Part shown: in pieces, positions 12,662-58,135 of the stretch | Layout of the letters: each line of letters begins with the position of its first letter | How positions within the stretch are numbered: position 1 is the stretch's first letter | Assembly (NCBI GenBank): GCA_002104905.1 | Contig: MCFE01000188.1 | Location: 1-64,000 of the forward strand | DNA: 64,000 nucleotides | Direction: 5' to 3' | DNA from: Basidiobolus meristosporus CBS 931.73 | Taxonomy: Eukaryota > Fungi > Basidiobolomycota | Program-made: the position numbers and the translations under genes | Notes under the pieces: model-generated | Database searches by the model: none | Told to the model about the DNA's origin: nothing | What the model saw: the letters and a program-made list of their open reading frames with translations, nothing else

Positions 12662-17806
<5,145 letters not shown>

Positions 17807-32596: not shown

Positions 32597-35500
32597 ATGC
32601 AAATGTCTGCGCCCTTCGAGCTAGACGACTTTCTCTCAAACCTGAAAAACCCTGGTATGCTAGCGATGTTCTTGAACTGTCCATAGCCTTGCTCATGCTC
32701 ATGCTCCTTACCTTGTTTCCAAACACTGGCCATACCCATCAGTCCTTGATAAGAAGATCTCAGCACTCTCCACTTTTGAACAAGCCAGCCGTGACTCAAA
32801 ACAAGAGTACGAGGTATGTGGTGCAATAAAATGCTTTGGTTCACCGGTGGTCTAAGTGCAGGCCGTTGTTTTCCTTTAGTCTAAGCAACTCGATGAGGCA
32901 GTCCAGGTGCTAATTCATACGGTGAAGTCCCCGCAAATGAATCTATGTCTTGCGGGGCTCGCCGCTGCTGGGGCCCTTCTGTATCAGTTCGAAGTTTATC
33001 ACCCGACGCTTTTGAAGCCCTATGCACCCCTACTCTTCCCCCATCTCCTTGATCGCCTTGGCGATTCAAAGGAAAAGGTCAGAGAAGGGGCGCTTACTGA
33101 GCTGGTCAACTTGTGGAGGTTGACCGGTGCCTCCCCTGACATTCAGAGCACTCCGCAGAAAGCTCAAAGCAAAGCCACCACCGCTGTCGGGGTTTACTTT
33201 GAAAAAGAAATGAAAGCTCATGGATTCAATCATAAGACTTGGAGAGTGCGGGAGCAAGTAAGTTGCTTTTGGGTTCGAAAGTGAGCAAAGATTGCTAACT
33301 AGACCGATCTTCACTGGCTCTAGGTACTGTCATGGGTGGTGCAATGTGTCAAAACGGTTCCCGACTTCAGTCTCAAGCCGTATGTTCCCTTCATCGTGAA
33401 GCTTCTTGAGGACTCGCATGACCTGGTTCGAGAAGCCAGCAAAGAGACTTTAGTGACATTGTTTTCGTAAGCATCGCCCTACTACTATTCACTAGAACAC
33501 CCCAGCTAACCAGACACGAACTCTGCTCTTCACAGCTCGAGCTCCCAGCGGATGCGACATGATCTTGCCAAAGAACTCCAGAAAAACAACATCCGCGGCA
33601 CCATAGTTGATAGTATTTTGGGGAAAATTGAAGCCAACTCCAAAGTGATGGATTCCTCGTGCCAGGCTATCGAGACAGAGCAAGAGCCGCTTCAGAATCC
33701 TGCCCCTGATGACGGTATCGAACAAGAAAAGTGGGAGATCGGCTCGCATTCGACCACGACAGAGAGTGATTCCTTGCCACCACCCCATAGCAAAGAGCAT
33801 CCCGAGCCTAGCAGAGCACCCCAATCGACGGACGACGACGTCGATGTAGTGCATGTGTACAACTCCAAGGATCTTGAAAACGAGTTCTCTAACCTTGCAA
33901 CGGTTTTCAAAGGAAAAGAGACGGAAGATAACTGGGAGTCGAGAGATCGTGCTTGGCAAAGACTTCGAGGAATTATTCGAAGCGACGCACCCTCCAGATA
34001 CCAAAGCACCATGACCGGCGGCCTACGAAACAGCATGACGCTGATCCTAGACACTCTGCATAGTCTTCGGACGTCGTTGGCGTTGTCGACGCTCAATCTC
34101 GTCAAAGATCTGGCGGTGTTCTTGGGATCCATGTTGGATCCACACTTGGACCAGCTCCTTGCAAATCTTCTGAAGCTGAATACGCAGACCAAGAAATTGG
34201 TCGCGCAGGCCTCATTCGAAACCACCTGCGTAGTGCTTCGTATGACCTCGTACAATCATCGCACCACAAACACGATCACCATGGCAATGGGTGACAAGAA
34301 TGTGCAGCTTCGTGGGTTTGTTATCGGATACGTCAAGGTGCTTTTGGAGGCGTTCGGCGGCAGAAAGGAGGTGTTCGAAAAGAGCCATGGCGTTGATTCG
34401 ATCGAGAATTGTATACGCAAAGGTGTAAGCGATGCCAATCCTCAGGTGCGGGAAAGCAGCCGTGAGCTGTTCTGGGTGTTTTGGGAGCTGTGGAGGGGCA
34501 AAGGTGAGGCCCTAAAGAAATCCTTCGACCCCAGCACTCAGAAGCAGTTGATGCGTCTACGAGGCCACGAGGCGGTTGATGTCTCCAGATCCCAGACCCC
34601 GTCGATATCGGTTCAGAACCAGAGCTCCCGCACCAGATCCGGTCCTCGAATTGACATCACATCGCATGATGCCAAAGGCCCTGCCAAACGTAAAGCCAAC
34701 CAGAATGGTGGCCTCTCCCTGCCAAAGAGCCCGCTGCCCTCCAAATTGCCCTCCCCCACCAACATGAGCATCCCTCGCCTGGCCTCTCACGATGGCACAA
34801 CTCTATCCAGTCGCTCTGCCGAGAACAGCCTGACGTCCCCACAGCTTCATCCTAGGAGCATGTCTTCAATGTCGTTCAACAGAAGATGCGTTTCTCCAAA
34901 GCCTACCTCCCCTACTGTTGCCTCTCGCAGGGCTCAAACACCATCACTCTCTCCCCCATCCACCCATAGGCTGAGGGCAAAAACTCCCACCCTATCACCC
35001 CCAAGCGCCTTGAGGACTCTACGCTCCAGCACTCCCACGCTGACTCCACCCCGCAACACAGCTCGACCTCGTTCTCCTGGTGTAGCTTCACCAGTTGTAT
35101 CAGGCAGACGAACCCCTGGGATACCCTCACCAAGTCGACCACATACCCCTCACATATCTGGGCAGCGACCTGGCTCAACCAGGCCAATGACCCCTGGAAG
35201 CGTAGGAGTCGGGCCAAACCACAATCGGCCCAATACCCCGCAAAGCTCGTTATACGGGCGCTCGAGCACGCCTTTTAAGCTAGTGTCCCCTACCATCTCC
35301 ACCAAATCCAAACTTCCAAAACCTACCACGATTGCTCGTCCCGGAACCGTGTTCTCAAGACCCACCACCCCACAGACACTCCACCCATCCCCTCCGCCGT
35401 CGTCCACAGGATCATCATCTCCCCGTAGACGATTCGGAGCAGCAATACCCAGTCGTCTCGACTACCAATTGCGGAAGCTCTCGGTGATGGAGCAGTTGAA

Positions 35501-37787
35501 ACATAGTGACCATACCATCAGGACTGCGGGTATCAACAATCTGTATCACATGTATACTTCATCCCCCACCTCGACCGATACCACCCTGCCACCTGGAAAC
35601 AGCAAGTCACTGCCATCGCCACGGGTGCTCGCCCCTATTCTGCTGAGTCTGTTCAGCGACACACACCCCAAGGTAGTTGCGCAGCTTGTTAGGACAGAGG
35701 TGATGGATGTGATGACCCGGATCATTCCGCTAGAACAGCTCTTCCTGGCAGTTCTCAGCCAGAGCTTGTCTCTCTCCACGAACGATGACACCCAGATCAA
35801 CCACCCTGCCCTTCCCATGCTCAAAGCGATCGTGCCAGAAGACAGGGCCCTTGATATCCTGTGCATGACCCTTCAGATTCTCAAAACCCCTGGTGGTCTG
35901 CGGAACTCATCTCCCGCCCTAAGCAACATGACCACCGCAGAAAGGAAGAAGAGCGTGATACGTGTTCTGACCTGGATGGGGGAGATTGCTGAGCACGCGT
36001 TGATCTGGCAGAACGACCATATGCACGATGACGACGACGACGAAAGCGTCTTCCGAGACAAAACCAGCATCGGGGAAAAGGCCTACCTCTACTTCTCACA
36101 GGAGAAGAATATGCGCCACTACCTTTCCCGCATGCTTCCCTATCTAGGCTCCGTCCCTCCTACCGCCGCCACCTACCCACTGCTGATCGAGCTGATCAGG
36201 AAGCTGATGCAACTGGCACCGGACGTCTACTCCCAGTCCCTGATGGAATGCGAGCCACTGGTCGTCGACAAGCTAGAGATAGTGTTTGGCGACTCCACGC
36301 TGTACCCCGATCAAGACGCCTATCAAGGGAATGCTGGCATCAACATTGACGGTGGCTTCGTAACAGGGGCGGATGGTAAAGTGGAGGAGGTCGGCGACGA
36401 CAACTTGCTTGGCCTACGAAACTTTGTGCACGACCAGGACGCGCAACGCATCACCACCACCTCCAACATGCTCGCCAATCGTTTGGACGCAATCAAGCTG
36501 GTAACGATATCACTGGTTGCTGTAGCGGATCCGAACCGGCCACTTATCACCCTTTTCACCTGTAGGAATTGGAACGGGATGAGGATCAGTTCGCCTTGGC
36601 TCTTGAGGACCGCATGTCGTCATCCTCCAACGAGCTGGATTACTTTGGCAGCCCCACCAAGAGTATCCCCCAACCAACCCCAATGGCCGACTCCATCCCA
36701 ACCTACAGTCGCAAGTTGAGCGCATTCAGACCGCCAGATGAAGGTTAGTCATGGATACCATCTAAGCCACCGTGCGCAGCTGACCAATCTCTGTATATGA
36801 ACAGGCGCCACCACGCCCTTTCCACCATCGCTTAGCGATCGTTACCAGATGGTTGCTACACTAATTTCTCGTTTAGGAACCGGAAATGCCGACTCGTTCA
36901 CATTTAGAAAGCTCATCCGTGCCTCCAGGGAGACCTCCACCGAGGAAAACCCTAGGGAGGCGCACGAGGTTTGGGGACAGCATGGGATGTTCGACAATGT
37001 CATCACTGCCATCCTCAGCTTTTTGCAGGGCCCATATGTACGCACTACAGTATACACCTTCTCCCCTCGCTTCCTTCTAACCACGAACCCTTTCTAGCAT
37101 CCTGAGCAGAAGGAAAACTGCCTCCTGTTCGTTAAGCACCTGCTTACGAACCAAGCGGCCTTCTTCCAGCCCTACGTACGGGAGATCCTGAACCAACTGA
37201 TGGACTGTAGAGCGAACGAGTGGAACGAGGTAGGCAACCGGCTTTCATAGCGCACCCAGCCCATTCCCGATTAACTCGGTGGTTTTTAGGTTTGCAGCGC
37301 GGCGGAGGATGCTTTAGACACCTTCGTCATGTACATGGAACATCATATAGCATTGGAAGCAACCTCGGAATGGCTGGACAAAGCATTGACTATGGAGGAA
37401 ACCAATCCAGCCGCACACCAGGCCTGGTCTTCAGGGCCCAACCCTCTGGCAACCGCATTCGACATCATCTCTAGATTGATTCGTCGCTATTCCGAAGAGG
37501 AGACATCGAAATTGACGCAAAACGTTATGCCATTGGTTGTGAAGGTTCGCCCTCGTCAGTCGTATTAAATCCCTCACGAAGCTTGCTAACTTTGCGCCTA
37601 CCGTTGCTAGGGATTCCATGACGTTAGGCCGGAGGTGCGGAAGTCGGTGGTGGAGGTGGTTGTCTCGCTCTACGAAATGTGCGACCAGTCCGTGATAGAT
37701 GACTCCGTCATGCCCGACCTCACCTTGTCGCAGAGGAAACTGGTCACATCCTATCTGGAGCTGAGCGGGAGCCATAGGTTTCAATGA
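32597..37787 (+). CDS. STU1: CLASP/Stu1 microtubule-stabilising protein (TOG/HEAT domains, S/P-rich linker, C-terminal domain), about 10 exons
   Basis: HEAT/TOG motifs: LLDRLGDSKEKVRE, LLEDSHDLVREA, FKGKETEDNWESR, LHSLRTSL, GDKNVQLR, GVSDANPQVRESSR; C-terminal GFHDVRPEVRKSVV..QRKLVTSYL. All junctions read as in-frame GT-AG introns. Confidence 0.9.
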
Positions 37788-38461: not shown

Positions 38462-40916
38462 ATGTCTGTTGTTGGTATGTTCTCTACTTGTTGCGTACCG
38501 CCTACAGGCGAGGCTTGCTAACGGCTCCTGGTTGTTTCCCACAGGTATTGATTTCGGTTCTCTTCAATCTATTATCGCTGTTGCCAGAAACAGAGGTATC
38601 GATATCGTCTGCAATGAAGTGTCCAACAGAACCACCCCGTAAGTGTTTCGCCACCTGAGTCTCTACAGACGAGTTCCTCTAGCTAACCCTCACCTTTCTA
38701 GTTCCTTGATTTCTTTCGGCCCCAAGCAAAGATTCCTCGGTGAGGCTGCCAAGACCCAAGAAGTCTCCAACTTCAAGAACACTGTTGGTTCCCTTAAGCG
38801 TTTGGCTGGAAGAGCCTTCGACGACCAAGAGGTCCAAGAGATCGAATCCCAATTCATCAACGCCAAGCTTGTTGATGTCGATGGCCAAGTTGGTGTCAGA
38901 GTTAGATACGGTGAATCCGAGACCGACTTCTCCTCCACCCAGCTTGTTGCCATGTACCTCGGCAAATTGAGAGACATCGCTGCCGCCGAGCTCAAGGCTC
39001 CCGTCTCCGATGTTGTCATCTCTGTTCCCGCCTGGTTCACCGATGCCCAAAGAAGAAGCATCCTCGATGCTTCCGAGATTGCTGGTCTCAACTGCCTTCG
39101 TCTCATCAACGATACCACCGCTGCTGCCTTGGGTTACGGTATCACCAAGACCGACCTCCCCGAGGAGCAACCCCGTCACGTCGTGTTCGCCGACTGCGGT
39201 TACTCTTCCTTCACCGTCGCCGTTGTTGCCTTCAAGAAGGGCCAACTCACCGTCAAGTCCGTTGCCTTCGACCGTCACTTCGGTGGTAGATACTTCGACC
39301 AAGTCTTGGTTGACTACTTCGCCGAGCAATTCAAGGAGAAGTACAAGATTGATGTCAAGTCTAGTCCCAAGGCTCTCTTCCGTCTTCGTGCCGGCTGTGA
39401 GAAGCTCAAGAAGGTCCTTTCCGCCAACACTCAAGCTCCTTTGAACGTCGAGTCCATCATGGAAGACATCGATGTCTCCGCCATGATGAAGAGAGAGGAG
39501 TTCGAGGAGCTCTGCAAGGGTATGTTGGAGCGCATGGAGGACACTCTCGCCCAGGCCGTCAAGGACTCTGGTTTGACCGTCGAGCAAATCGACACCATCG
39601 AGGTTGTCGGTGGATCCACCCGTATCCCCGCCTTCAAGGAACGCCTCAGCAAGTTCTTCGGCAAGGACATCAGCTTCACCCTCAACCAAGATGAGGCTGT
39701 TGCCAGAGGTTGCGCCTTGCAATGCGCCGTCCTCTCCCCCGTCTTCAAGGTCCGTGAGTTCGCTGTCCAAGATGTTACCAGCTACCCTGTCAAGTTCACC
39801 TGGACCGCCTCCGACTCTGGTTCCGAGAGCCAACTTGAGGTCTTCAGTCACAACAACCCCGTCCCCAGCACCAAGGTCCTTACTTTCTACAGAAAGGAGG
39901 CCTTCGATGTTGAGGCTTACTACTCCAACCCCGAACTCTTGCCTCCTGGTGTTAACCCTTGGATTGGCAAGTACAGCGTCAAGAACGTTGTCCCTACCGC
40001 CGAGGGTGAACTTTCCACCGTCAAGGTCAAGGCTCGTCTCAACGTTCACGGTATCGTCAACGTAGAGGGTGCCTACATCGCCGAGGAGATCATCAAGGAA
40101 GAGGAGGAGCCCACTCCCATGGAGACCGACGGTGAGAAGAAGGAGGAGAACACCGAGGCTCCCGCCCCCAAGAAGGTCAAGAAGATCATCAAGAAGACCG
40201 AGCTCCCCGTCGTCGGTGGTTCCACCAATGTCGACAAGACCGTCGTTAACAAGCTCAAGGAGCTTGAGAACGAGATGTACGCTGCCGACAAGTTGGTTGC
40301 TGATACCGAGGAACGCAAGAACGCCTTGGAGGAGTACGTCTACGATACTCGTAGCAAGTTGGAGTCCAAGTTCAAGGACTACGTCCTTCCCGAGGTCAAG
40401 GAGAGCTTCTCCAAGCAACTCTACGATACCGAGGACTGGCTCTACGACGAGGGTGAGGATGCCACCAAGAGCGTCTACATCAACAAGCTCAACGAGTTGA
40501 AGGCCATCGGTGACCCAATTGCTCGCCGTTTCAAGGAGCACGAGGAGCGCCCCAGAGCTGCTCGTCTTCTCCGTGAGACCATCGAGAAGTTCGCCATCGA
40601 TGTCACCTCCAACGATCCTCGCTACGAACACATCTCCGACGAGGAGAAGAAGTCTATTGTCGATCGTTGCGAGAAGGCTCAAGCCTGGCTCGCTGAGAAG
40701 ATGGACCAACAGAGTGTTCTCACCAAGGTCCAAGACCCCGTTGTCACCTCCCAGGAAATCCTCAAGGAGAGAGAGGCCTTGGTCTTCTTCGCCACCCCCA
40801 TCCTCTCCAAGCCTAAGCCCAAGCCCGAGCCCCCCAAGGAAGAGGCCCCCGCCGCCCAACCTGAGGCCGAGTCCAAGGCCAAGACCGAGGAGGCCCCCGA
40901 GATGGAGATTGATTAA
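38462..40916 (+). CDS. SSE1: Hsp110-family Hsp70 nucleotide-exchange factor (Sse1/Hsp88)
   Basis: Exons 38462-38474, 38545-38638 and 38702-40916 give [30 protein letters not shown]. Also [48 protein letters not shown]. Strong codon bias; the C-terminus ends EMEID, not EEVD. Confidence 0.97.
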
Positions 40917-41820: not shown

Positions 41821-42335
41821 CTACACGAGCTGTTGGGATTGGTAGCTATGGGGTTTCCCCATCCTTGGAACCATCTGTTTCAAGGTGCAAACTATCCGGT
41901 GAAACCACAGCCGAAACCTCGCCTTCCTCCTCCTACGTCCCATCATGGACACCGAGTCGTCCAGGTCCTTATTCACGGGCGCGTCGGGGTCCGGCACGTC
42001 CTCGAGCGTGTGGATGGACGGGGACCGGAAGTGTCCCGAGTTCGCTTCGTGCAGAGACCTCTCCCTGAGGTTGAGGTTGAGGTCGGTTTGCTGGTTCACG
42101 TATTGGGTGACCCTGGCCCGTTTGGACTCCTTCGCCGGCGGCATCTAGAGAAACAAGAGGGCCCCCGACCCACCGACCGTTAGACAGCCACAAAATTTCC
42201 ATCACTTCGCAAACGCGTGCCCCTTACCAGTGTGTTGTGGGTCTGAAGGTTCTCCTGGGTTAACGGGTGGCTCCTTCTCGATTTCGTCTTCCGGCCTGGG
42301 TCCGACTGCCGGTTGAACGGGCCGAGGCTCGGCAT
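41821..42335 (-). CDS. Hypothetical two-exon protein (about 143 aa)
   Basis: The intron at 42145-42226 (GTAAGG..CTAAC..CTCTAG) joins MPSLGPF..PLTQENLQTHNTL to MPPAKESKRARVTQYVNQQ..RRRRKARFRLWF. The start is uncertain and an upstream exon is possible. Confidence 0.5.
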
Positions 42336-43045: not shown

Positions 43046-44548
43046 CTAAACAAATGGCCACTCATCACCGACCACGAAGCCACGTGACACCTCGGACCAA
43101 CACCCAACCCACAGTTGGTCTTTCCTAAGCCGGTCGGTGATGTTCTGCACCTGCTCACGAGGCCGGTATCGAACATGAGCCAACATCATGGATAAACGGG
43201 ACTCGGCGAAGTGCTCTTGCAACCTCACGAACGCTGTTTCCGGGGTGACCAGCTCGATCGGCCTCTCCAGCACCCCCGGAAGCGTCCACGACGAGGCCAC
43301 CGGCTCCGCCAGAGGGACCACCCCGTAGGCATCCCCGACATACATCCTTACCGGTCCCATGTAGTCGTGCTTGGGTAGGAAGGCGATGAGGTGGTCCTCC
43401 GGAATACCCAGGCCCGGGTTCGCCTCGATGCCGGTCCAGCTGAACCGATGGGACCATCCCTTCCAGTGTCCAGGGTTGAGTTGAAATCGCCAACGCGGGC
43501 CGAGGGAGGGTAGGGACCGCGGGGGTTCCTGAAGCTCCTTCCACACCGGATACGGGTAGAACAGACATCCTTTGACGAAGATCTCGCTCCCCGTAGGGAC
43601 CGGGACCCCGGCCTGGTGCAGACATTCCGTCGCCGCCCGGTTCTCCCCCAGCAGCTCGGACGCGCTAAAGCACTGGCGCACTTTTCTGTCCAGCGTGTCG
43701 GCTGGGGACGGTTTGGTGGGTCGGTCAGTCGGTTGGCAGATGGTGAGGATTCGGGGTAAGCGTGGAAAGGTACTTACTGGATTTCGGCCCTTTGAACCAC
43801 TCCAGTCTGAGGTCGTCCAGATCTCCTACACGTCCGCTGGGGCCCAGGAAGTCCTGGTCGAAGATGTAATACTTGATGGCCACCTCCCAGTGGGTGACCT
43901 GGCCTGTTTCTGAGGTGGGGGGTTGAAACACCAGGTCCAGGTCCCCAAGGGTCCTTCTTGCCACCCTCTGTTTCCTGGGTTTCCGGGGGGTTCGTCTTTT
44001 GGCGTCCGGCTGCTCGGTGGGGTGCTGGGGTGACTGGTCACTCTCCCCTACCGGTCTGGTGGGCTGAGGCTCCGGTGGAGTGTCGAACAGCTGAACGCAA
44101 CTCCACACCCGGCCGTCCACCGTCACCCGCTCGCGCAGCCAGTACTCAACCAACATGGCGAAATAGCTTCCCAGCCGGTGGATCGCCTTTTGTCGGTTCA
44201 AAAACTCGTAGAGCGGGCTGGGGTCCTCATCCAAGGCTAGGCCCACGGGGAGAAACGGGGGAAGGGTGGCGAGGGTCAGTTAGAACGACGCTTCAAACGG
44301 TCGGTTGGTTGGGTGGTGGGCGTACCTTCTAGCCAGGCTCTTGACCTTTCGTACTCGGCCAAACCCCACTCCCGAGCCACGAAGGAGCGGCGGAGGCCGG
44401 TTGGTTCCTGAAATATGGGCTCCCCGTGCAGCACCCTAGGTAGAAGGTTGGTTAGGTGGGGGGGGAACGGATGAGGTACTGGCGCACAAGTGGGTAGATA
44501 CCAAGCCAGGTGACGAACCGCCTTGTGTCTAAAGTGAGGGAGTTCCAT
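43046..44548 (-). CDS. DUF1853-like protein (predicted PD-(D/E)xK nuclease-like fold), 445 aa, two introns
   Basis: Exons 44548-44326, 44236-43778 and 43701-43046 total 1338 nt in frame. Motifs: VRHLAW, WLEALDEDPSPL, RLGSYF, TLGDLDL, HWEVAIKYY, GPKSTDTLDRK, KGCLFYP, PGHWKGW, PKHDYMGP. These match the pattern I recall for DUF1853. Confidence 0.8.
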
Positions 44549-45099
44549 GTTGGGCGTGGGTGGGCCGCCGTCGGGAACCGTTCATTTATTCGGTGAGAGG
44601 GCGGATGCTGATTTGTGGATCCACGGATCCCACCGCCTGTGCCTCTGCATTCATCGACCCTGCCCCATATGATATCCTACTTCCCCCGTGCCCGATCGCC
44701 TCCCAAAAATCGGACCTCAGGTGAAGAACGATGGTCCGATTCGTCGGGGACCAACTGGGTCCAAACGCGATGGATTACCAAAGAACTGTGAACCCACGGG
44801 CAATCCAAGGGTGCCGGTTGCTCTTCACCTCCAGATACTTGTATCCAAATGCGCATCTGATGGGCTGCCTTCCCCTGGAAACATTCTCGTGAATGTACCT
44901 AGAGTGCCTGATCCTCCTAACAAAAATGCGTCCCATTACCCAGAAGTAGGTCCAGATCAATCGGAATTCCGCTCAATGGCCCATGGACCAAAATGACCAT
45001 ACTGGATAGCCTGTTTGCCAGAGGGTCATGCATCGCACTGGGTAAAATTAACCATGACCAGATAACCAATTCTGAAGCCACTTAAGGCAACGGGTATCG

Positions 45100-45899
45100 T
45101 GAAGTGAAGTTGTTGATCAACCCACTTGAGCACCCGCAGGCTGACTCCCGCCGGAATCCAGTGTTCCCACCCGAATTGTTGTGTGATTTTGGGGGACATT
45201 GGGACTGATTGGGAGTACTAGTGGGTCTGTGGCTCTCACTTTGTGACTTGTTGCATGTAGAAGTGATGTTTCTGTTGTTACATGGTCTGGACAAAGCAAA
45301 TGGTGTAAGATAGGTCTAGGATGACCGAAACAGCAAGTGTGCCAGACTTGGAGTTGTTTGGATCATTTCGTAAGTTTTCATATACCAAGTGTTGCAAGAT
45401 TCTATAGAGTACCGGAGTTGATTTGGAAAACCATATCTGGCAAGCTAAATTGCAAGACAATAATTTGTATTTCATCAATAAACAACGCAGTGTTGCAAAT
45501 CTTGTATTTTCACACGCGTACTCACTCAACTAGGCCATTCAGATTGGAGTCTGCAAATCTTTGAGTATATTGCCCAATTCCCTTGTTGGAACTTACTTGG
45601 AGTATTTCATCAGGATAACAGGTACCCAGTACACAAGAATATGAAAGTGGTCTAGAGTCTCCCAAACTTTGCTAACATGCACATTGGACCTTTCTGTTGC
45701 AATATTCTGAGTATTGGAAGTGATGTGGAGAACTAAAGGATTTACATGTTATTCACCTATATATTTATTGATCATAAGTATGATATTTGTACTTCTAATA
45801 CAGTAAAGCAAGCAAGCACATAGAGTTTGTAAGGTAAGGCCCCAGGAGTATGTGTGCAAAGTTTAGAGTCTTATGAACAACTTTGAGAAAGATCATAAA
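45100..45899. mobile_element. Older Copia debris: GAG-pre-integrase remnant and two diverged LTR fragments in opposite orientations
   Basis: Minus-strand WHTCCFGHP near 45320. 45565-45694 resembles the middle of the Copia LTR on +, and 45695-45899 resembles the LTR 3' end on -. Confidence 0.5.
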
Positions 45900-47135
45900 T
45901 GTTGTAAGAGTCCTGGAAATATTGGAAGTGATTTGGGAGAAGAAGTAGATTATGTGGTTTTCACTTAATGATTTATTGAATGTAAAAGTAGTATTAATAC
46001 TTTTACATGGTCTTGGCATAACAAACATGTAGAATAGGCTAAGGAAGGTCCCAAGAACATGTGTGCAAAGCATGGGGCCGTTTGGACAACTTTGAGAATT
46101 TTCATGTTCTGGGTACCTGGTATTTTGGTAAAAATATTCCAAGTAAATCCCAACAAGGAATTTGGTCAGTGTTCCCTAGGATTTCAAGGTAATGATCTAA
46201 GTGGCCAAGTTAGGTGAATACTTAGGTGGAATTACAAACTTTTACAACACTCCCACTCAGCTAAATGTTCATACTGACTAGTCCTAATTTTGACCTGAGA
46301 TATTCAAACTTGTCTCTAGCTAATGGTTTGGTCAATATGTCTGCAATCATTTCAACTGAAGGACAGTAAGCTAAGCTAGCTAAGTTATTCTCTATAGCTT
46401 CATGTATGAAATGATGTCTAATTTCTATGTGCTTAGTTCTAGCATGAAAAGTTGGATTTCTACCTAATTGCATGCATCTTGAATATCTTGAAATAAAGTC
46501 ATAGGCATTTTTTGTCATAAGCCTAAATCTGTGAGAAGCTTTCTTAGCCACATTGCTTCTTTTGTAGCCTCACAGGCTGCCATATACTCTGCCTCTGTGG
46601 TGGAAAATACCACAGATGGTTGCTTTCTTGAATTCCATGAAATTGCTCCTTGACAGTAAAGAAAGGTGTATCCTGTGGTGGATCTACTGTCTTCTAAATT
46701 TTGTCCCCAATCTGCATCAGAGTATCCATCAAGATCCTGTTCTAAATCCTTATAAGTGTATCTTAAGCAGATATCAGCAGTTCCTTGCAAATGTCTAAAA
46801 ATCTGCTTAACTGCTGCACTATGATCAGATCCATGGCTCTGATTATACAGGCCAACAACTTCCACTGAACATGGGATATCTGGACATGTTTTAAGCACAA
46901 TATACATCAGACTGCCAACCATAGATTGATAAGGAAAGTCAGGGCTTTCAGATGGCACCAAGCACTCTTGATTTGGTTGAGTTTTGACCAAGTTAAGGTT
47001 TGTCTCCATTGGGGTAGCTGCCAGTTTACAGATTCCATTTGATACTTCTTTAGTATGTCTTGAGTATACTTAGATTGGCTTAGGGTGATAGTCTGGGTAC
47101 TTAAGTAGTAACTGAGCTCTCCTAGAATGGACATC

Positions 47136-49035
47136 TGTGGTAATGGAAAGTATTCCATTACTACAATATCTCTAAACCAATATTGCACTCATTTCTTTAT
47201 TTTGCTTTTTGCTATTGTAACACACAAGTGAAAGATCAAGAATTTCCAACTTTGAAGAACAAATGCTCTGGACCCTGACAAGCAATCCACCCAAGAATAT
47301 TATATCATACAGAACATGTAGTAGCCAACACATGTTTCAAATTACAGCTCATTTGAAGCAGTACTTAAGGAGTTATGACCAAAAGAGTCCAATTATTATA
47401 TATACTATGCCCTATTGCTAAGATTACTAGGGTGACTTTGATCGCGTGTAACTTTTGAACCAGCCAATCAAATCACGTGATATTTTCACAGGTGCTGCGC
47501 CTATGTCCAATCTGCACCACTGCAAGATTTAGCTTTGTATCATGTGAATTGCTTGCGCAATTGCCCAATAACTTTGACCCTTCAAAATTTTCATATATAT
47601 GACTTCCCCAGCTGAAAAATAAAAGAGAGCCTCTCTTTCCAGAATCTCCACACTACAATTACAAGCTTAAAGGTTATAAGACATCCCCTGCATCACTTGC
47701 ACTGTTAAGTATTCTGACTTTGATTAGTACTTCATCAGTAAAGAGACTGCAAAGCTCACAAGAATCCAATCTAAGTTCTACAAGAAACTACCACTTTTCT
47801 GTTGGAAAAGTCCCCTCTGTTGTGCATCAACATTTAAAACTTAGCCAATTTTACTCCGTTTGAAAATCTAGTACACTAACTGCTTTTCCCTAACCCAAAC
47901 ATAACAAATCCCAGTTACAGTTTATTTTATCCCACCTCAGAATCTATTTTTAGCTATCACACCTGATCTATTTTCAAATGGTCATTACGTTATCAACCTA
48001 TCTGCCAAGCCTTCCCAGGTAATTAGTCATCTGAGATCTATCCAACCACTGTGCAGTTGCCAAGACATCAGTTGAGTGATGATGTAATTTTCATTTATCT
48101 TATGCACCTATGAACACCCAAATTGATTTCAATCAATCCAGTCCCTTGGCGCTTACTAATTCAACTTGATCAGAAAAGTATAAATAAAGTTTACTGAACC
48201 TTTTGGTTTAGTGTGTGTCTCAACAAAATTAAGATTCTGTCTCAGCAAAAATAAGAATCCAACAATTCTGTTCTAGTTTCTATCCAAGCCTAGTATATCT
48301 AGCACTCCAAAGAACACCAAGCCTAGCCTGCCTAGCAAACAAATATCATTGTCTTTATAGCCAACCCAGCTATATCTAAGACCAATATTAGATCAGAATC
48401 TTTCTGCTAATATTTCCGCCACTCTCTGAAAATTCTAAGATTCTGCACTTAATTGTCCTTTTGGTTCAGTTAGACCATTCAAGAGTTTTATTACACTTTC
48501 TCTTGGATACAACACCCTCTAAGAAACCCCTTTACTCTAAAGACCCCTTTAGAGACCCCTTTACTCTAAAGAAGCCCCTTTAGGCACCCCTTTAGTGTAA
48601 AGTCCACTTTAGAGACCACTACAAGAAGCCCCTTTACTCTAAAGACACCCCTTTAGACACCGCTTTAGGTTTAAAGACCCCTTTAGAGACTTCTATAACA
48701 CACCCATTTAGGTTAAAGGGGAGTTCAGAATTTCTATATTAGGTAATATATTCTTGGAAAGGAAAGTGACTTCCAAATAAGGAAAAGTTACTATAAAAGT
48801 AAATAAGCCAATTAGTTGACAGAAGGTCAGAACACTACTGTATAAGTGATAAACACTGCCCACAGTAAATTTTGAGCCTAAGATTGAGGAAATTAGTAAA
48901 GTTATATCTTCTACTGGTATAGATCAAACTCCAAGTAAACTATTTCAGTATTAGCATACTGGAAGTTGTTGTATATTTTTGATTAGCCTCTACATTGTAG
49001 AACAAGCCCCAAACTAGTCATAATACAACACAACA
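47136..49035 (+). mobile_element. Solo LTR of the Gypsy Y family inserted in Copia A RT, 4-bp TSD CATC
   Basis: Ends are TGTGGT..CACAACA, near-identical to 55289-56531. CATC lies at 47132-47135 and 49036-49039. Removal restores gacatcctgagctcc, matching the Copia B RT. Confidence 0.93.
47818..48514. mobile_element. Solo LTR Z (697 bp) nested in the Gypsy Y solo LTR, 5-bp TSD CCCTC
   Basis: Ends are TGTTG..CAACA, with CCCTC on both sides. It is absent from the two other LTR Y copies (aagtcccctctaag). Confidence 0.88.
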
Positions 49036-51625
49036 CATCCTGAGCTCCTTAGATAGGCTGGGTTTAGTCTCTTCTAATGTTTTAAGGTTGTTGGCAGCTA
49101 TGATAAGATCATCCACAAATAGAGCTAATAGAGCTGGATTGGCTCTATTTGGCTTATTGTATATACTATAGTCAGCATTACTCCTTTTGAGACTCAAAGA
49201 TTCCAAATAAGAATCTATTTTGCAATTCCAGGCTCTTGGCAATTGTTTGAGTCCATATAGAGACTTTTTAAGCTTGCAGACCAAATGGGGGTTATCTTGG
49301 CCAACAAGCCCATCAGGCCAGTCCAAATACATGTCCTCATCAAGTTCTTTATTTAACAATGCAGTTTATACATCTATTTGATGAATAAAAAACTAATATT
49401 TGGCTGCAATAGCCAATATTAATCTGATGGAATTAAACTTGGCAACCAGTGCAAAGGTCTCAGTATAGTCAAGTCCTTTTGTTTTAGAGTATCCTTTGGC
49501 CACAAGTCTTGCTTTGTATCTTTCAACTGTACCATCAGCCTTGTATTTTGTTTTGAAGATCCATCTACATCCAATTGATTTTAGGTTGATTGGTAATTTG
49601 ACTAAGTTCCAAGTTTGATTTTCCATTAGGGCCTGATAGTCCTCAGTCATTACAGATCTCCAAAACTTTGTCTGAGGGCTGTTTAGCACCTCTTTTACAG
49701 TCTGGGGCTCATCAATATGGACTGAATATGCATAGGCTAAGTTTGTACCCTCATTGATATGGTAATTTGGGCTATTTCTTGTCCAGATGGATCTCTGGGC
49801 ATTTAATACTAGAATGCTCACTTCTGGGATATCCCTGGGCCCTGATTCAGGCTGAACCATTGCTGTAGAGTCTTCTGAGTGAAAGAATTTTTATTGTTTT
49901 GCATGGATTCAATCCTGACAATTAGTGGACTTGAGATCAAATTTATGTCATCATCTGATGACATAATTGATGAAAATCTTGAATTTTCATCAAACAACAC
50001 ATCCCTGGACTTGCTCAGCTTCTTTGTCTTGGTATTTTAGAGTCTGTATGTCTTACTTTCATTGCAGTAGCCCAAAAATATGCATTTTACACTTATTGGC
50101 TCAGTTTTTGACTGGTTTGCAGGCAGTTTCTTGGCATATGCTGTACACCCAAATATTCTGAGATGTTCTGCACTTAGTCTGTATCCATTCCATGCTCCAA
50201 ATGGAGTAGAATCACAAAGTATTCTGTTATAACTCCTATTTTTGAGGTATACAGCTGTGGCAACTGATTCAGCCTAAAATAATAAGATAATGTTTGATCC
50301 TGGATCCTGAATCTTGCTATATCAATTATTGATCTGTTTGCACATTCTGCTACTCTGTTTTGCTGTGGGGAGTATAGTACAGTAGACTCTTGCTTTATCC
50401 CATGAATTTTGCACAAGTGGATGAAGAGTCTTGAGGTATATTTTCCACCATTGTCAGAGGGTATTTTCTTGATTTTTCACCAGTTTCTCTCTCCACCATG
50501 GCTACAAGCTCCCTGTGATTATACATAGCTTCTTGCTTTCTCTCCATGAAGAAGGCCCTTGTGTATCTTGTACAGTCATTAACAACAGTAATCAAATACT
50601 TCAACTTGCCTAAGGATAAACTTTGCAATGGTGCACACAGATCTGAGCAAATTAGATCTAATTTTTCTTAGTTTAAGTTGACCCAGAGCTCTTGATTGGT
50701 TGTCTGGCTTGTTTCCCATATATTCAGGCTTCACAGTGCTCCAAATCATCTGGGGGATCAATTTTTACTCCGGAAATTAGCTGATCTTTGATCATCTTGC
50801 ACAAATTATCAAAATTGATGTGTCCAAATCTCCTGTACCAAAGCATTGATGTTTGTTCATTTAAATTACATATATTGGCTTCCAGATATGACGGAATATA
50901 AGTCAGCTTATACAGATTCTGATCTCTGATACCCAAAGCAATATGAGCACCATTTTGATCAGTCATCCTGCATTCAGAATTGTCAAAGCTGGAACTGAGT
51001 CCTTCTACTATGGCCTTGCTTACAGATAGTAGGTTCTTGGCTAATTTTGGTACATGGAGTACTTCTTTAAAGGTCAGTGTATGGCTTCCTTTACTGCTTT
51101 TAAGGTTGACTTGGAGAGTTCCTTCTCCCACTTCATCAAGTGTTTTATTGTCACCCATGAAAACCTTCTTAATTCAAATTTCTTGATACTGGGTAAAAAG
51201 TTCTTTTTGGTGTGTAATGTGCTGAGATGCTCCAGAATCAGTATACCACATCTGAGAATCCTTACTTGTGGTCAAATTTAGTGCAGATATCAATAGTGTA
51301 TCTTCAGCTGTTGCAGCATTTCCATATTTAAGCCTATTTTGTTGACTATCTCTTTTTATCTAGCACTGGTCTGATGTGAGTCCTTTCTGTTTGCAGTAGT
51401 TGCAGAACAGGTTGCTATTACCTTTGAAAGGTCTTGGTATCTCCTTTGCTGGTTATCATTGCTTATCAAAGCATTCTCCTGTTCCTTCTTATTGGCACTT
51501 TATTTTCTTAATTCTTTGTCCAGGAGCCTTTGATGTACATAATTTAGGGTCAAATCTTCAGTTCTGGACTCTAGGACTGATACAAGGCCCTGAAGCCTGT
51601 CTGTTGGGCTAATCAGCATGGTCAC

Positions 51626-54600
51626 TGTTGCAAAAATTTGTATTTCCACCTAAATATTCACCTTACTTAGTCACTTAGATCATTAACCTCAAATCCTAGA
51701 GAATACTGACCAAATTCCTTGTTGGGACTTGCTTAGAATATTTTCACCAAAATACCAGGTACCTAGAACATGAAAATTCTCAAAGTTGTCCAAACAGCCC
51801 CAAACTCTGCACACATGTTCTTGGGACCTTTCTTAGCCTATTTTATGTGTTTGTAATGCCAAGACCAGGTAAAAGTATAAATACTACTTTTACATTCAAT
51901 AAATCATTAAATGAAAACCACATAATCTACTTGTTCTCCCAATCACTTCCAATATCTCCAAGACTCTTACAACAGGTTATGAGCCCCAAGCTGTCACTCT
52001 CTGCAATGTCTACTACTGCTATTACCCGAATTTTTCCCTCTGCTGAAAAATTGGATGGATCTAACTACCAAGTGTGGAAGGTGAAGATGAAGATGCTGCT
52101 ACACAAAAGAGGTCTTTGGGATATTGTCATGGGAGAAGAATGTCCTCCTAAAAACATGGGAGAGGAAGCCTTAAAGTACCAGAAGAAAGAGCAAAGTGCC
52201 TTAACTGCATTTGCCTTAATGTCAAGGACAAATTGCTAATTCAATGCCCAAGAGCAAAAACGGCAAAGAATGCCTGGGAAGCATTAGAAGACACCTACCA
52301 GTCATGTTCAGCTGCCAAGAAAATGTATCTGAGCCAAAAATTCTTTACTACAAAGATGCTGCCAGGAGAAGAAATGAAAAATCTAATTAACAGAATTACC
52401 CTGTTGGCAGATGAGATGGAATCTGTGGGCATACCAACTACTGATAAGGATGTGATAGTTACCATCCTGAATAGCCTGACAGACAAGTTTCAGGGCCTTG
52501 TATCAGCCCTAGAGTCCAGAACTGATGATTTGACCTTGAATTGCGTATGTGGAAGGTTCCTGGATGAAGAATTAAGAAAATCAAGCGCCAATAAGAAGGA
52601 AATGCTTTAATAAGCAATGATAGCCAACAAAGGAGATACCCAAAACCCTAAAAGGCAACAGCAACCTATTTTGCAACTACTGCAAAAGGAAAGGACACAC
52701 ATCAGACTGGTGTCTCAAAAAGAGAGATTATCAGCAAAAGAAGCCTGAATATGGAAATGCTGCAACAACTGAAGATAGACTATTCATATCTGCACTAAAT
52801 ATGACCACAAACAAGGATTCTCTGACGTGGTATATTGACTCTGGAGCTTCTCAACACTTTACACGCCAAAAAGAACTTTTTACCCAATATCAAGAAATTC
52901 CAATTAAGAAGGTTTTCATGGGTGACAATAGAACACTTGATGCAGTGGGAGAAGGAACTCTCCAAGTAAACCTTAGAAGCAGTGAAGGCAGCCATACACT
53001 GACCTTTAAAGAGGTACTCTGTGCTCCAGAAATAGCCAAGAACCTACTCTCTGTAAGCAAGGCCACAGCAGAAGGACACATATGCCAAAAAACTGGCCGG
53101 AATTCAGTCAAAATTTGAGCCAAAAAGTGTAAAATGCATATTTTTGGGCTACTGCAACAAGAGTAAGGCATACACACTCTACAATACCAGAGCAAAGAAG
53201 CTGATCAAGTCCAGGGATGTGTTGTTTGATGAAAACTCAAAATTTTCACAAAAAATGACATCAGATGATGACGAAAATTTGATCTCAAGTCCACCAATTG
53301 TCAGGATTGAATCAGAGCAAAACAATGAAGATTTTTTCACTCCAGAGAACTCTAAAACCATGATCCAGCCAGAATCAGGGCCCAGGAATATCCCAGAAGT
53401 GATCATTCCAGTATCAAATGCCCGGAGATCCAATTGGACAAGAAATAGCCCAAATTACTATATCAATGAGGGTACAAATTTAGCCTATGCCTATTCAGTC
53501 CATATTGATGAACCCCAGACTGTAAAAGAGGCCCTAAATAGCCCTCAGACAAAGTTTTGGAGATCTGCAATGACTGAGGAATATCAGGCCCGGATGGAAA
53601 ATCAAACTTGGGACTTAGTCAAATTACCAATCAACCAAAAATCAATTGGATGCAGATGGGTCTTCAAGACAAAATACAAGGCTGATGGTACAATTGAAAG
53701 ATACAAAGCAAGACTTGTAGCCAAAGGATACTCTCAAACAAAAGGACTTGACTATACTGAGACCTTTGCACCAGTAGCCAAGTTTAATTTCATCAGATTA
53801 ATATTGGCTATTGCAGCCAAATATTAGTTTTTTATTCATTAAATGGATGTAAAAACTGCATTTTTGAATGGAGAACTTGATGAGGACATGTATATGGACC
53901 AGCCTGATGGGTTTGTTGACCAAGATAACCCCCATTTGGTCTGCAAGATTAAAAAGTCACTATATGGTCTCAAACAATCACCAAGAGCCTGGAATTGCAA
54001 GATAGATTCTTATTTGGAATCCTTGAGTTTCAAAAGAAGTAATGCTGACTATAGTATATACTATAAGCCAGATAGAGCAAATCCAGTTCTATTAGCTCTA
54101 TATGTGGATGATCTTATTATAGCCGCCAATAACCTAGATATATTGGAAGAGACTAAATCCAGCCAATCTAAGGAGTTCAAGATGTCTGATTAAGGAGAAC
54201 TTAGTTACTACTTAGGGATTAAGTTCTCCATAGACAGAAGTACCCAGACTATTACCCTAAGCCAATCCAAGTATATTTAAGATATACTAAAGAAGTACAA
54301 AATGAAAGACTGCAAACCAGCAGCTACCCCAATGGAGACAAACCTTAACTTGGTCAAAACTCAACCAAATCAAGAGTGCTTGGTGCCATCTGAAAGCCCT
54401 GACTTTCCTTATCAATCTATGGTTGGCAGTCTGATGTATATTGTGCTTAAAACATGTCCAGATATCCCATGTTCAGTGGAAGTTGTTGGCCTGTATAATC
54501 AGAGCCATGGATCTGATCATATTGCAGCAGTTAAGCAGATTTTTAGACATTTGCAAGGAACTGCTGATATCTGCTTAAGATACACTTATAAGGGCTCAGA

Positions 54601-55288
54601 ACAAGATCTTGTGGGATACTCTGATGCAGATTGGGGACAAAATTTAGAAGACAGTAGATCCACCACAGGATACACCTTTCTTTACTGTAAAGGAACAATT
54701 TCATGGAATTCAAGAAAGCAACCAACTGTAGCACTTTCCACCACAGAGGCAGAGTATATGGCAGCCTGTGAAGCTACAAAAGAAGCAATGTGGTTAAGAA
54801 AGCTTTTTACAGATTTAGGCCTAGGCCAAAAAACGCCTATTACTATATTTCAAGATAATCAAGGATGTATGCAATTAGGTAGAAATCCAACTTTTCATGC
54901 TAGAACCAAGCACATAGATATTAGACATCATTTCATACGTGAAACTATAGAGAATAACTTAGTTACCTTAGTTTACTGTCCTACAGATGAAATGATTGCA
55001 GACATATTTACCAAACCATTAGCTAGAGACAAGTTTGAATATCTTAGGTCAAAATTAGGACTAGTCAATATGAACATTTAGCTGAGTGGGAGTGTTGTAA
55101 AAACTTGTATTTCCACCTTACTATTCACCTAACTTAGTCACTTAGATCATCACCTTCAAATCCTAGAAAATACTGACCAAATTCCTTGTTGGTATTTACT
55201 TAGAATATTTTTTACCAAAATACCAGGTACCTAGAACATGAAAATTCTCAAAGTTGTCCAAACAGCCCCAAACTTTGCACACATGTTC
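51626..55288 (+). mobile_element. Ty1/Copia retrotransposon B (same family as A, integrase core deleted); 3' LTR interrupted by Gypsy Y
   Basis: 5' LTR 51626-51974; PBS GGTTATGAGCCC (iMet half-tRNA type); gag (EKLDGSNYQVWK), protease WYIDSGASQH, RT ([22 protein letters not shown]) and RNase H; PPT TGAGTGGGAG; 3' LTR from 55093. The left flank is GTCAC. Confidence 0.94.
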
Positions 55289-56598
55289 TGTGGTAATGGA
55301 AAGTATTCCATTACTACAATATCTCTAAACCAATATTGCACTCATTTCTTTATTTTGCGTTTTGCTATTGTAACACACAAGAGAAAGATCAAGAATTTCC
55401 AACTTTGAAGAGCAAATGCTCCAGACCCTGACAAGCAATCCACCCAAGATTATTATGTCATACAGAACACGTAGTAGCCAACACATGTTTCAAATTACAG
55501 CTCATTTGAAGCAGTACTTAAGGAGTTATGACCAAAAGAGTCCAACTATTATATATACTATGCCTTATTGCTAGGATTACTATGGTGACTTTGATCGCGT
55601 GTAACTTTCGAACCAGCCAATCAAATCACGTGATATTTTCACAGGTGCTGCGCCTATGTCCGATCTGCGCCACTGCAAAATTTTAGCTTTGTATCACGTG
55701 TATTGCTTGCGCAATCGCCCAAAAACTTTTATCCTTCAAAATTTTCATATATATGACTTCCCCAGCTGAAAAATAAAGGGAGAGCCTCTCTTTCCAGAAT
55801 CTCCACACTACGGTTACAAGTTTAAAGGTTATAAGACTTCCCCTGCATCACTTGCACTGTTGAGTATTCTGACTTTGATCAGTACTACATCAGTAAAGAG
55901 ACTGCAAAGCTCACAAGAATCCAATCTAAGTTCTACAAGAAACTACCACTTTTCTGTCGGAAAAGTCCCCTCTAAGAAACCCCTTTACTCTAAAGACACC
56001 CCTTTAGACACCCCTTTAGTCTAAAGACCCCTTTAGAGACCCCTTTAAGAAACCCCTTTACTCTAAAGAAGCCCCTTTAGGCACCCCTTTAGTGTAAAGT
56101 CCACTTTAGAGACCACTACAAGAAGCCCCTTTACTCTAAAGACACCCCTTTAGACACCCCTTTAGGTCTAAAGACCCCTTTAGAGACTTCTACAACACAC
56201 CCCTTTAGGTTAAAGGGGAGCTCAGAATTTCCATATTAGGAAATATTTTCTCAGAAAGGAAAGTGACTTCCAAATAAGAAAAAGTTACTATAAAAGTAAA
56301 TAAGCCCATTAGTCAACAGAAGGTCAGAACACTGCTGTAGAAGTGATAAACACTGCCTACAGTATATTTTGAGCCCAAGATTGAGGAAATTAGTGAAAGT
56401 TATATCTTCTATCGGTATATCAAACTCCCAATAAACTATTTCAGTATTAGCATACTGGAAGTTGTTGTATATTGTTGATTAGCCTCTACATTGTAGAACA
56501 AGCCCCAAACTAATCATAATACAACACAACAAGAATTTGGTGGAGGACCTGGGTAGTTTGAACCTTTCACTATACAAGCATCAAGAAACGTTACAAGA

Positions 56599-58135
56599 AT
56601 GACTGATACACCACTCCCAGAGTTAATAGCCACTTTTAAAGGTGCCAGGAGAGAATGTTACTGAGTTTCTAGAGGAGTTTAACAATATAGCTGCAGCATT
56701 TGAGCTATCACACAAGAACAAAATCCAATTGTTTCCCTTTCTCTGTGAAGTTGAAGTATCAAGATTCTTACGAAGTTTGGACCCATTTAAGATATCTGTT
56801 GGCACTAACTATAACTGGGACACTGCTCAACAAGCTATTTTAGCTGAATACCAAAAAGAAGCACAGTTTGTTACACTAAATGAGCTAGAAATGCCTTACA
56901 ACAAGACCCAACCCTTGCAGAAGTACATTCAAAAGTTTGAGTCAAAAGCAAGGCATGTTGAAGCAGCTATTGAAATTCCAAGATATTATCAAAGAAACTA
57001 TTTTCTGATGAATATGCCTCCTGAAATACGTAATGCCATTAGCCACCAAGTTCAGGCTACAAGCTCCTACGACAATGTTAAACAAATGGTGTTAAACTAT
57101 CAATCAGGGAGACAAGTCATGGATTCCATTAATATTCAAATGAAGATTTCCACTCCAGCTAAACAAATTCTTCATCGTACAAATAACACACAAAGTGATC
57201 AGGTTAATGAATTAATTGATGCATTAGGAAAGCTGACGCTTAAGTTGGACTCTCAAAGTGTACCATCATCAAGCCTCAACAAGGCAAGACCAGAAAATCC
57301 CAAAACAACCAGTAATTATCCACAGCAAACCAAATATTGTGTGTACTGTGAATCTGCTGAGCATAGCCGTTATGGTTGTCAAATATTGAATATTGATATT
57401 GACAGTCATAAGGTTATGATTGATTGTTATGGGAAGATCTGTGATATTGCTGGAAACCCCTTGCCTATCAACAGAGGTTATGGTGGAATGAGGTCCTATG
57501 TACTTGCTCAAGAAGAATCAAGTAAAAGCACCAAGACATCAAATTTCATACAAGTCCAAAAGACTGCAGAAATTCCAAGCAATGAACGTTACGTACTCAC
57601 AATATCAGATCCATCAGGGCAGGTCCAAGAATATCTAATGGAAAAAGAGGAAGTTGAAGAGTTTAATTGCCTTATTGATAAGAGAAAGTATGTTTCTACA
57701 GAGAACAATCCTAAAAAAGTGTGTACCGACAAAAGAAATCAGCCAATTGTTGAAATACCAGTACAGCCAGAAACATCAAAAATCCAAAAAGAATACTTGC
57801 AACCTCAATCTAAGTATGATACTACTGCAATTACACAGAAAGTTATTGACAAATTCTGGAAATCTCCATTTCCACAACTTACAAATCAAGAAATGTTCAC
57901 TGCCATCAACAATCTCAGTCAACTACTACCAGAAATGGTTAAGCCTATGAACAAAGATATCCTGAAGAATTATCAAGAACAGTCATCAACAACATTATCA
58001 AGTGAACAACTACGATTTGAAGTAAAAAAAGCCTTTTACTCTACAACAACAGGAAGCTATGCTGCTACAATCAACAATGTTGAAGTGGAATGTGTTTTGA
58101 TTCTGGATCAGAAATCAATGCTATCACCGCTATGA
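56599..58135 (+). pseudogene. Gypsy Y gag (frameshift shortly after the ATG at 56599)
   Basis: The long open frame 56642-58135 carries a CCHC-type knuckle; the ATG lies in a neighbouring frame. Confidence 0.8.

Follow-up and report, generated by a model that had tools for sequence, protein, structure and literature searches.

The DNA analyzed here (hereafter the window) comprises positions 1 to 64,000 of contig MCFE01000188.1 from the gut-dwelling fungus Basidiobolus meristosporus CBS 931.73, and carries on its minus strand a gene encoding a protein of the DUF1853 family. An earlier note, made from the letters of the window alone, had rightly described this gene as fully intact but had counted three exons and two introns. 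Our analysis reveals instead four exons separated by three GT-AG introns (Table 1), the product of which is the public 423-amino acid (aa) protein K493DRAFT_26836 of the same strain (P0002 in our searches). Exons 1 and 2 match P0002 residue for residue, the former corresponding to its first 16 residues, exon 4 is identical to it over 217/217 residues, and exon 3 over 151/152, the sole mismatch being the Met that translation table 11 reads at the first codon. The C-terminal half encoded by exon 4 ends in SRGFVVGDEWPFV. Exons were searched separately, while full-length analyses were done with P0002.

Intron 1 is easily overlooked because it is in frame and stop-free, that is, it reads through as an open reading frame (ORF). 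However, a BLASTP alignment with P0002 displays a 22-residue gap precisely at this intron, and the conserved LAWV motif is regained once it is taken out. The corresponding intron in Basidiobolus ranarum is not in frame, which confirms that intron 1 is a true intron. The start Met of the gene aligns with residue 1 of bacterial homologues, and the protein has no N-terminal extension when aligned with them.

Table 1. Positions in the window of the DUF1853 gene, its motifs and the surrounding features
Feature	Position (nt)	Strand	Remarks
DUF1853 gene	44548..43046	(-)	intact, four exons and three introns, 423-aa product
Exon 1	44502..44548	(-)	ATG at 44548; M1 to first two bases of W16
Intron 1	44436..44501	(-)	66 nt, GT..AG, phase 2, in frame, stop-free
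Exon 2	44326..44435	(-)	last base of W16 to first base of A53
Intron 2	44237..44325	(-)	89 nt, GT..AG, phase 1
Exon 3	43778..44236	(-)	helix alpha1 (YFAMLVEYW), beta1-beta2 insert, TLGDLD, HWEVAIK
Motif-I helix YFAMLVEYW, residues 77-85	44139..44165	(-)	A79 in place of the canonical Glu; E83 one turn later
Beta1-beta2 loop insert, residues 104-147	43953..44084	(-)	Basidiobolus-specific; basic tail K132-R147 at 43953-44000
Motif II TLGDLD, residues 148-153	43935..43952	(-)	D153 is the conserved Asp; E151 of the family is Asp
Motif III HWEVAIK, residues 168-174	43872..43892	(-)	ExxxK variant of (D/E)xK (PMC3045609)
Intron 3	43702..43777	(-)	76 nt, GTAAGT..AG, phase 1
Exon 4	43046..43701	(-)	residues 206-423 and stop: helix alpha2 with K212, beta4, C-terminal half
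K212 codon	43682-43684	(-)	helix alpha2, exon 4
CLASP-family gene	33552..36719	(+)	synteny anchor; Pfam CLASP_N, E 4.9e-63
Hsp70-family gene	38643..40916	(+)	synteny anchor; Pfam HSP70, E 9.6e-155
AT-rich retrotransposon nest	45001..64000		Copia and Ty3/Gypsy fragments, 5' of the DUF1853 gene; GC 0.36-0.41

The DUF1853-like nature proposed in the earlier note was borne out by Pfam, whose DUF1853 profile (PF08907, gathering cut-off 25 bits) matches exon 3 with 42.4 bits (E 8.4e-11) and exon 4 with 27.7 bits (E 2.4e-6), the two matches being co-linear along the profile. The B. ranarum ortholog (P0001) scores 70.6 bits with the same profile, and P0002 is labeled "DUF1853 family protein" in UniRef; a search of NCBIfam gave no match. 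Moreover, the alignment with homologues of approximately 300 aa is co-linear from residue 1 to residue 423, running from an N-terminal VRDLAW to a C-terminal RGFVV..WP. The family has been assigned to the PD-(D/E)xK superfamily (Laganeckas et al. 2011, PMC3045609) and is also described in Steczkiewicz et al. 2012 (PMC3424549).

Contig JASJQH010007022.1 of B. ranarum (L001) carries CLASP, Hsp70, and DUF1853 genes in the same order and orientation as the window, and all three introns of the DUF1853 gene occur there at identical codon positions and in identical phases, as judged by tblastn and from the sequence. Since the gene has the same neighbors and the same introns in both species, it is older than the split between them. 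It was present beside Hsp70 and CLASP in their common ancestor and has been intact in both species since. This rules out a private, recent acquisition by B. meristosporus. A bacterial contaminant in the assembly is likewise ruled out, because the gene contains three spliceosomal introns and is syntenic with Hsp70 and CLASP in two species. Between the two species, identity is 57% for the DUF1853 proteins vs. 89% for Hsp70 and 75% for CLASP, while the DUF1853 pair displays a nonsynonymous divergence (dN) of 0.32-0.35 and saturated synonymous divergence (dS). In the region L001:1680-1975, annotation of the B. ranarum gene missed exons 1 and 2, the public model K7432_004319 (336 aa) starting downstream of them from an internal Met.

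The chromosomal surroundings of the gene are eukaryotic, with a gene for a PIGO/PIGG-type GPI ethanolamine-phosphate transferase, CLASP, and Hsp70 upstream in the window. As for composition, the GC content at third codon positions (GC3) is 0.69-0.76 in the DUF1853 gene and 0.61-0.72 in its PIGO, CLASP, and Hsp70 neighbors. The high GC pointed out in the earlier note is not a foreign signature, because GC3 resembles that of neighboring genes, and a foreign-composition signal is ruled out. With its introns, host-like codon usage, and eukaryotic chromosomal neighborhood, the gene is indeed "eukaryotised," as that note had put it.

DUF1853 proteins are described as having a motif I (E/Q), a motif II (D), and a motif III (ExxxK), with an additional Lys on the following helix (PMC3045609). 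We determined how often the corresponding residues occur in an alignment of 148 sequences (147 for columns 79 and 220). Six residues are kept in the Basidiobolus protein: E170, which is invariant (148/148), D153 (Asp in 147/148), K174 (Lys in 147/148), H168 (His in 146/148), D207 (Asp in 146/148), and K212 (Lys in 145/148). Four others are replaced. A79 takes the place of a Glu found in 142/147 sequences, D151 that of a Glu found in 142/148, with Asp solely in the two Basidiobolus proteins, S220 that of a Gln found in 144/147, and H13 that of an Asp found in 129. As a set, D151, S220, and H13 occur in Basidiobolus only. TLGDLD and HWEVAIK, both pointed out in the earlier note, are present, but the set of conserved catalytic-type residues is incomplete, since the motif-I Glu is Ala and Gln220 is Ser. 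Instead of the YFE that characterizes motif I of DUF1853, with its Glu/Gln, the protein has A79 followed by E83 one turn on, and YFAMLVEF is found at motif I in the B. ranarum genome. In the predicted structure, E83 lies at i+4 on the helix formed by residues 74-90, and it may stand in for E79.

In view of the alterations at A79, D151, S220, and H13, nuclease activity cannot be assumed. The protein could be a catalytically dead derivative, in which the fold would have been kept as a nucleic acid-binding or scaffold module while hydrolysis was lost, a scenario compatible with either of the origins considered below. The four replacements speak for it, as do the interspecies identity, far below the 75-89% of neighbor genes, and the fact that motif II has already been lost (GQLK) in a related eukaryote-like clade. 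Nevertheless, we find it unlikely, although worth keeping in mind, since D153, H168, E170, K174, D207, and K212 are kept in both species, E83 is conserved across a whole subclade at i+4 on the same helix, and two bacterial homologues (P0070 and P0093) have A79 yet display otherwise intact motifs.

The predicted structure of the whole protein, computed with AlphaFold2 (AF2), has a predicted local distance difference test (pLDDT) score of 85.8 and a predicted template modeling (pTM) score of 0.86. In this model, the motifs follow one another in order on an alpha-beta-beta-beta-alpha-beta core consisting of a helix (residues 74-90), three strands (96-103, 148-156 with D153, and 167-178 with E170 and K174), a second helix (209-218, with K212), and a last strand (243-255). 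Together with the published assignment (PMC3045609), this core order agrees with the PD-(D/E)xK-type fold put forward in the earlier note. A model of the domain on its own (residues 60-300, pLDDT 81.8) retrieved structural matches of which the top 50 are nearly all PD-(D/E)xK-fold proteins, with best Z scores of 6.5 (Card1), 6.2 (AF1548), and 5.6 (VRR_NUC), although Z scores below 8 may reflect a common arrangement. The maximum Z of a VIA search with the whole model was 4.2, and Foldseek searches with the whole protein and with the domain gave no match at E <= 1e-3. In the PDB, searched by sequence with the single protein and with a profile, we found no solved DUF1853 structure.

The beta1-beta2 loop of the protein is unusually long. 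Its length is 52 residues in the B. meristosporus protein and 43 in that of B. ranarum, whereas the loops of 146 homologues have a median of 12 and reach 33 at most. The low-complexity insert that the earlier note had spotted ahead of the motifs is readily recognized, ending in KRRTPRKPRKQRVARR, with 10 K/R among the 17 residues K132-T148. The whole insert has an isoelectric point (pI) of 11.2, and it is disordered in the AF2 model (pLDDT 57-69). At the equivalent place, B. ranarum has KKGNKKVKKTNTRR, which includes KKVKK. The length and basic character of the loop are therefore common to both species, but its sequence is not conserved. The loop adjoins the putative active site because it ends directly before the strand bearing D153. 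It would serve as a nuclear import signal, as a nucleic acid-gripping arm, or as both. A serious contender, if not quite the favored one, is that the loop is no nuclear localization signal (NLS) but either a nucleic acid-binding arm or low-complexity growth that is simply tolerated. This would fit its position beside the putative active site and the conservation between species of its basic character alone, and since an insert is also found here in the metagenomic homologue P0104, this site tolerates insertions. However, K/R-rich stretches of NLS-like composition are found in both species, and the protein has no N-terminal extension able to carry another targeting signal.

As for the distribution of the family, a HMMER search of 1.84 billion cluster representatives returned 726 matches, of which we considered the best 150, few of them with organism names. 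Below 1e-30 there is the Basidiobolus cluster alone, the next match being at 7.7e-23, and most of the 150 are approximately 300 aa long. Matches with a checked gene context are mostly bacterial. Among species-representative bacterial genomes, the 80 best loci belong mainly to Gamma- and Betaproteobacteria, the remainder to a few Flavobacteriales, Planctomycetota, and others, and neighbors in the ESM Atlas are bacterial DUF1853 clusters. A word-based search with exon 4 retrieved one protein, P0001 of B. ranarum, and a search with P0001 retrieved P0002. In such searches, the only close relatives are the two Basidiobolus proteins, and all other organism-named matches are bacterial; with a profile, those named besides Basidiobolus are Halomonas, Ectothiorhodospiraceae, and Bergeriella. 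No fungal homologue outside Basidiobolus is thus present among the matches listed or named in the word-based searches and the best 150 of the 726 HMMER matches, which agrees with the absence of a broad vertical distribution in fungi. It is difficult to reconcile with an ordinary, vertically inherited fungal gene. Either that or the contaminant, which would have to explain away the introns and the two-species synteny, strikes us as scarcely credible; nothing specific favors them, even if the gene has ameliorated to host composition. Elsewhere among eukaryotes, DUF1853 has been reported in plants, algae, and Phytophthora (PMC3045609). Some family members have an additional domain, as in P0192 (from a metagenome) and P0237 (from a Ketobacteraceae metagenome-assembled genome), where a protein of approximately 500 aa, named rhombosortase by NCBI, combines DUF1853 and Rhomboid (PF01694) domains. 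At another locus (L083), a long DUF1853 gene and a rhomboid-family gene lie two genes apart.

In quick trees, the Basidiobolus pair was placed on a long stem (approximately 1.8 substitutions per site) with no stable neighbor. In a careful tree of 45 rows, computed in IQ-TREE under LG+C20 with posterior mean site frequencies (PMSF), the pair groups with P0070 (support 97/81) and then with P0093 (91/63), and these sequences form, together with a eukaryote-like group, one clade (95/88). P0070 (assembly GCA_001545115.1) and P0093 are encoded in dense bacterial gene contexts of 40-42% GC. On the contig of P0093 (L088, positions 1-3717 and 13052-15910), at approximately 40% GC, a V-type ATPase operon and valS are separated by a few genes, an arrangement that may hint at Chlamydiota as the taxon. 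The longer matches P0078, P0145, P0066, P0099, P0213, and P0214 form a separate clade. Two of its contigs, with 61-63% GC, have neighbor genes encoding eukaryote-type domains (YVC1_C, NIF, EF-hand, and a Mut-7-like exonuclease), and the cluster mates of these genes include proteins from the TARA 0.22-3 µm fraction. From these neighboring domains, the clade looks picoeukaryotic. In two GC-rich and probably picoeukaryotic metagenome contigs (L084:6001-11588 and L086:2246-7435), a DUF1853 gene with GQLK is directly upstream of a Mut-7-like exonuclease gene of approximately 1350 aa, with DNA_pol_A_exo1, tRNA_edit, and Mut7-C domains, a pairing that may be conserved. Throughout the subclade, E79 is absent, column 79 being A, S, or G, while E83 and R87 are present. 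Outside the subclade, E79 is present in 221/224 sequences.

These trees bear directly on how the gene reached Basidiobolus. A tree in which Basidiobolus is held together with the eukaryote-like clade outscores the quick free tree by 33 log-likelihood (lnL) units and falls just 7.1 units short of the careful tree, with p = 0.295 in the approximately unbiased (AU) test. The gene could hence belong to a shared eukaryotic lineage, whereby one acquisition by a eukaryote, or a eukaryote-to-eukaryote transfer, would account for it together with P0078, P0145, P0066, P0213, and P0214, with no separate bacterium-to-Basidiobolus event. In line with this scenario, E79 is missing while E83 and R87 are present in both groups, their loops are enlarged at four common sites (residues 178-202, 319-355, and 372-409, and one extra residue before RLG), and the family has been noted in other eukaryotes, as mentioned above. 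We nevertheless regard it as doubtful. The careful tree has P0070, with its bacterial context, as the sister of Basidiobolus, and the A79/E83 signature is not eukaryote-specific because P0070 and P0093 carry it as well. The enlarged loops have no sequence similarity, and loops commonly grow at sites that permit it. Most eukaryote-like members have a degenerate motif II (GQLK), whereas that of Basidiobolus is intact, the two groups sit on long branches and may be drawn together by this, and the eukaryotic nature of the contigs is read from neighboring Pfam domains only.

While the AU test cannot separate a direct bacterium-to-Basidiobolus transfer from a shared eukaryotic lineage, a bacterial ancestry of the subfamily is supported. 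The horizontal acquisition postulated in the earlier note is therefore upheld in part. The nearest relative, P0070, has a bacterial context, and no other fungi are among the matches listed, but a direct transfer is not singled out. In the explanation that we prefer, the gene would have descended from a bacterial-type DUF1853 subfamily in which the motif-I Glu had shifted by one helical turn (YFA..E for YFE). After acquisition, it would have gained three spliceosomal introns and its codon usage would have turned host-like, while several surface loops would have lengthened, the largest being the disordered 40- to 50-residue beta1-beta2 loop with its strongly basic end. The protein would hydrolyze phosphodiester bonds of nucleic acid in a Mg2+-dependent manner by means of D153, E170, K174, and K212, with E83 possibly substituting for the lost E79, and E151D, Q220S, and D13H, at near-invariant polar positions, suggest a changed specificity or a weaker activity. 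We infer this hydrolase mechanism as a whole. Taken together, we think it probable, with some reserve, that K493DRAFT_26836 is a full-length DUF1853 protein of bacterial-type descent, acquired before the split of the two species and endowed with such a nuclease mechanism.

Several points weigh against this explanation. The replacement of the motif-I Glu, Gln220, and Asp13 means that catalysis may be impaired. Scores in the fold searches are modest, neither a solved structure nor an activity was found for any DUF1853 protein, and the clustering of the catalytic residues around a metal site is putative. Splicing and expression of the gene are predicted, a search for sequencing runs having listed no RNA run for the locus. 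As for its origin, the trees single out no donor, the stem being long and the placement differing between quick and careful trees. No plant, oomycete, or named green-algal member of the family is among the rows of the tree, and a joint clade with the eukaryote-like sequences passes the AU test. A more elaborate scenario is, in our opinion, improbable. It would place the Basidiobolus gene in a eukaryote-adapted DUF1853 lineage together with genes of picoeukaryotic algae. This lineage, marked by migration of the motif-I Glu by one turn, would go back to a single ancient transfer, the donor being an intracellular bacterium that was possibly chlamydia-like, and in Basidiobolus its product would have turned into a nuclear nuclease targeted by the newly grown basic loop. 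Should an origin in Chlamydiota prove true, the nearest bacterial relatives would be intracellular symbionts.

The bacterial members shed little light on function. In 80 genomes, the commonest neighbor of DUF1853 genes occurs at 12/80 loci, and the bacterial neighborhoods give no functional hint because the neighbors are unrelated housekeeping genes. PADLOC found no defense-system match for the fungal protein or two homologues, and we found no function in the literature on DUF1853/COG3782. The protein itself was public and labeled DUF1853, and large-scale bacterial transfer into this strain has been published. What is new is the corrected exon-intron structure, the conservation of introns and synteny, a YFA..E subclade that comprises bacterial and probably picoeukaryotic proteins, and the altered active-site columns. 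For a widespread bacterial nuclease-fold family, a conserved, intron-bearing copy in a culturable fungus provides a second type of organism in which to search for a phenotype, and the YFA..E subclade offers a natural setting in which to test how active-site residues migrate in PD-(D/E)xK enzymes. Fungal genomics gains an old and fully domesticated example, well documented, to set beside the wave of bacterial-type genes already reported in Basidiobolus. The gene is a further example of the habit of this fungus of keeping such genes; the feature is real but rather ordinary, and no long-standing question is opened by it.

The remainder of the window is quickly described. Beyond the 5' end of the DUF1853 gene, GC drops to the values listed in Table 1 and the ORFs are fragments of Copia and Ty3/Gypsy elements, with Pfam matches to RVT_2, gag_pre-integrs, RVT_1, RT_RNaseH_2, Integrase_H2C2, and rve. 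This nest of transposable elements (TEs) begins approximately 450 bp 5' of the ATG, and the gene is, as the earlier note had it, the last one before it. We found no link between the two beyond adjacency, and nothing else favors an anti-TE role. A 747-aa ORF antisense to the Hsp70 gene (38679-40922, minus strand) matches Pfam NAD-GH, but the antisense ORF of Hsp70 genes is a well-known spurious ORF and not a gene. Between the Hsp70 and DUF1853 genes, there are two overlapping ORFs of 137-146 aa (41655-42183, plus strand), the one at 41655-42065 having no match in a Pfam scan, and small genes have also been called in the corresponding interval of B. ranarum.

How does the Basidiobolus protein compare with known systems? 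Like the members of PF08907 (COG3782), it has no known function, it is end-to-end co-linear with the bacterial proteins, and it retains Asp in motif II, ExxxK in motif III, and the additional Lys of the helix that follows. In contrast to them, it is encoded by a gene with three introns in a eukaryotic host, it is 423 aa long rather than approximately 310 aa, due to five enlarged loops, and it has Ala at the canonical motif-I Glu position with a Glu four residues on, in addition to Q220S, E151D, and D13H. The proteins nearest to it in the careful tree, P0070 and P0093 (the latter from JGI metagenomes), share with it the YFA..(V/I)E(F/Y)WL variant of the helix and the strand HWEV(S/A)(V/I)K(Y/F)Y. 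They differ from it by their bacterial context, their length of approximately 310 aa, their short loops, and their retention of GEFD and HQ(L/I).

The picoeukaryote-like P0078, P0145, P0066, P0213, and P0214, which come from marine and freshwater metagenomes, belong to the same subclade, with E83 and R87 but no E79, have loops enlarged at the same sites as the Basidiobolus protein, although with dissimilar sequences, and are probably encoded by eukaryotes as well. However, they are far longer (up to approximately 700 aa), most have the degenerate motif II (GQLK) and Arg for K212, and the DUF1853 gene adjoins a Mut-7-like exonuclease gene in two contigs. As for the genes of bacterial origin in Basidiobolus, Tabima et al. 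2020 reported 806 candidates for horizontal gene transfer from bacteria in B. meristosporus CBS 931.73, with Proteobacteria as the top source (PMC7466969); K493DRAFT_26836 is not mentioned in the text of that paper. The DUF1853 gene resembles these genes in belonging to an otherwise mostly bacterial family, in being flanked by fungal genes, and in having a composition indistinguishable from that of host genes. It differs from them in its structure, since the median candidate has no introns, whereas the DUF1853 gene has three.

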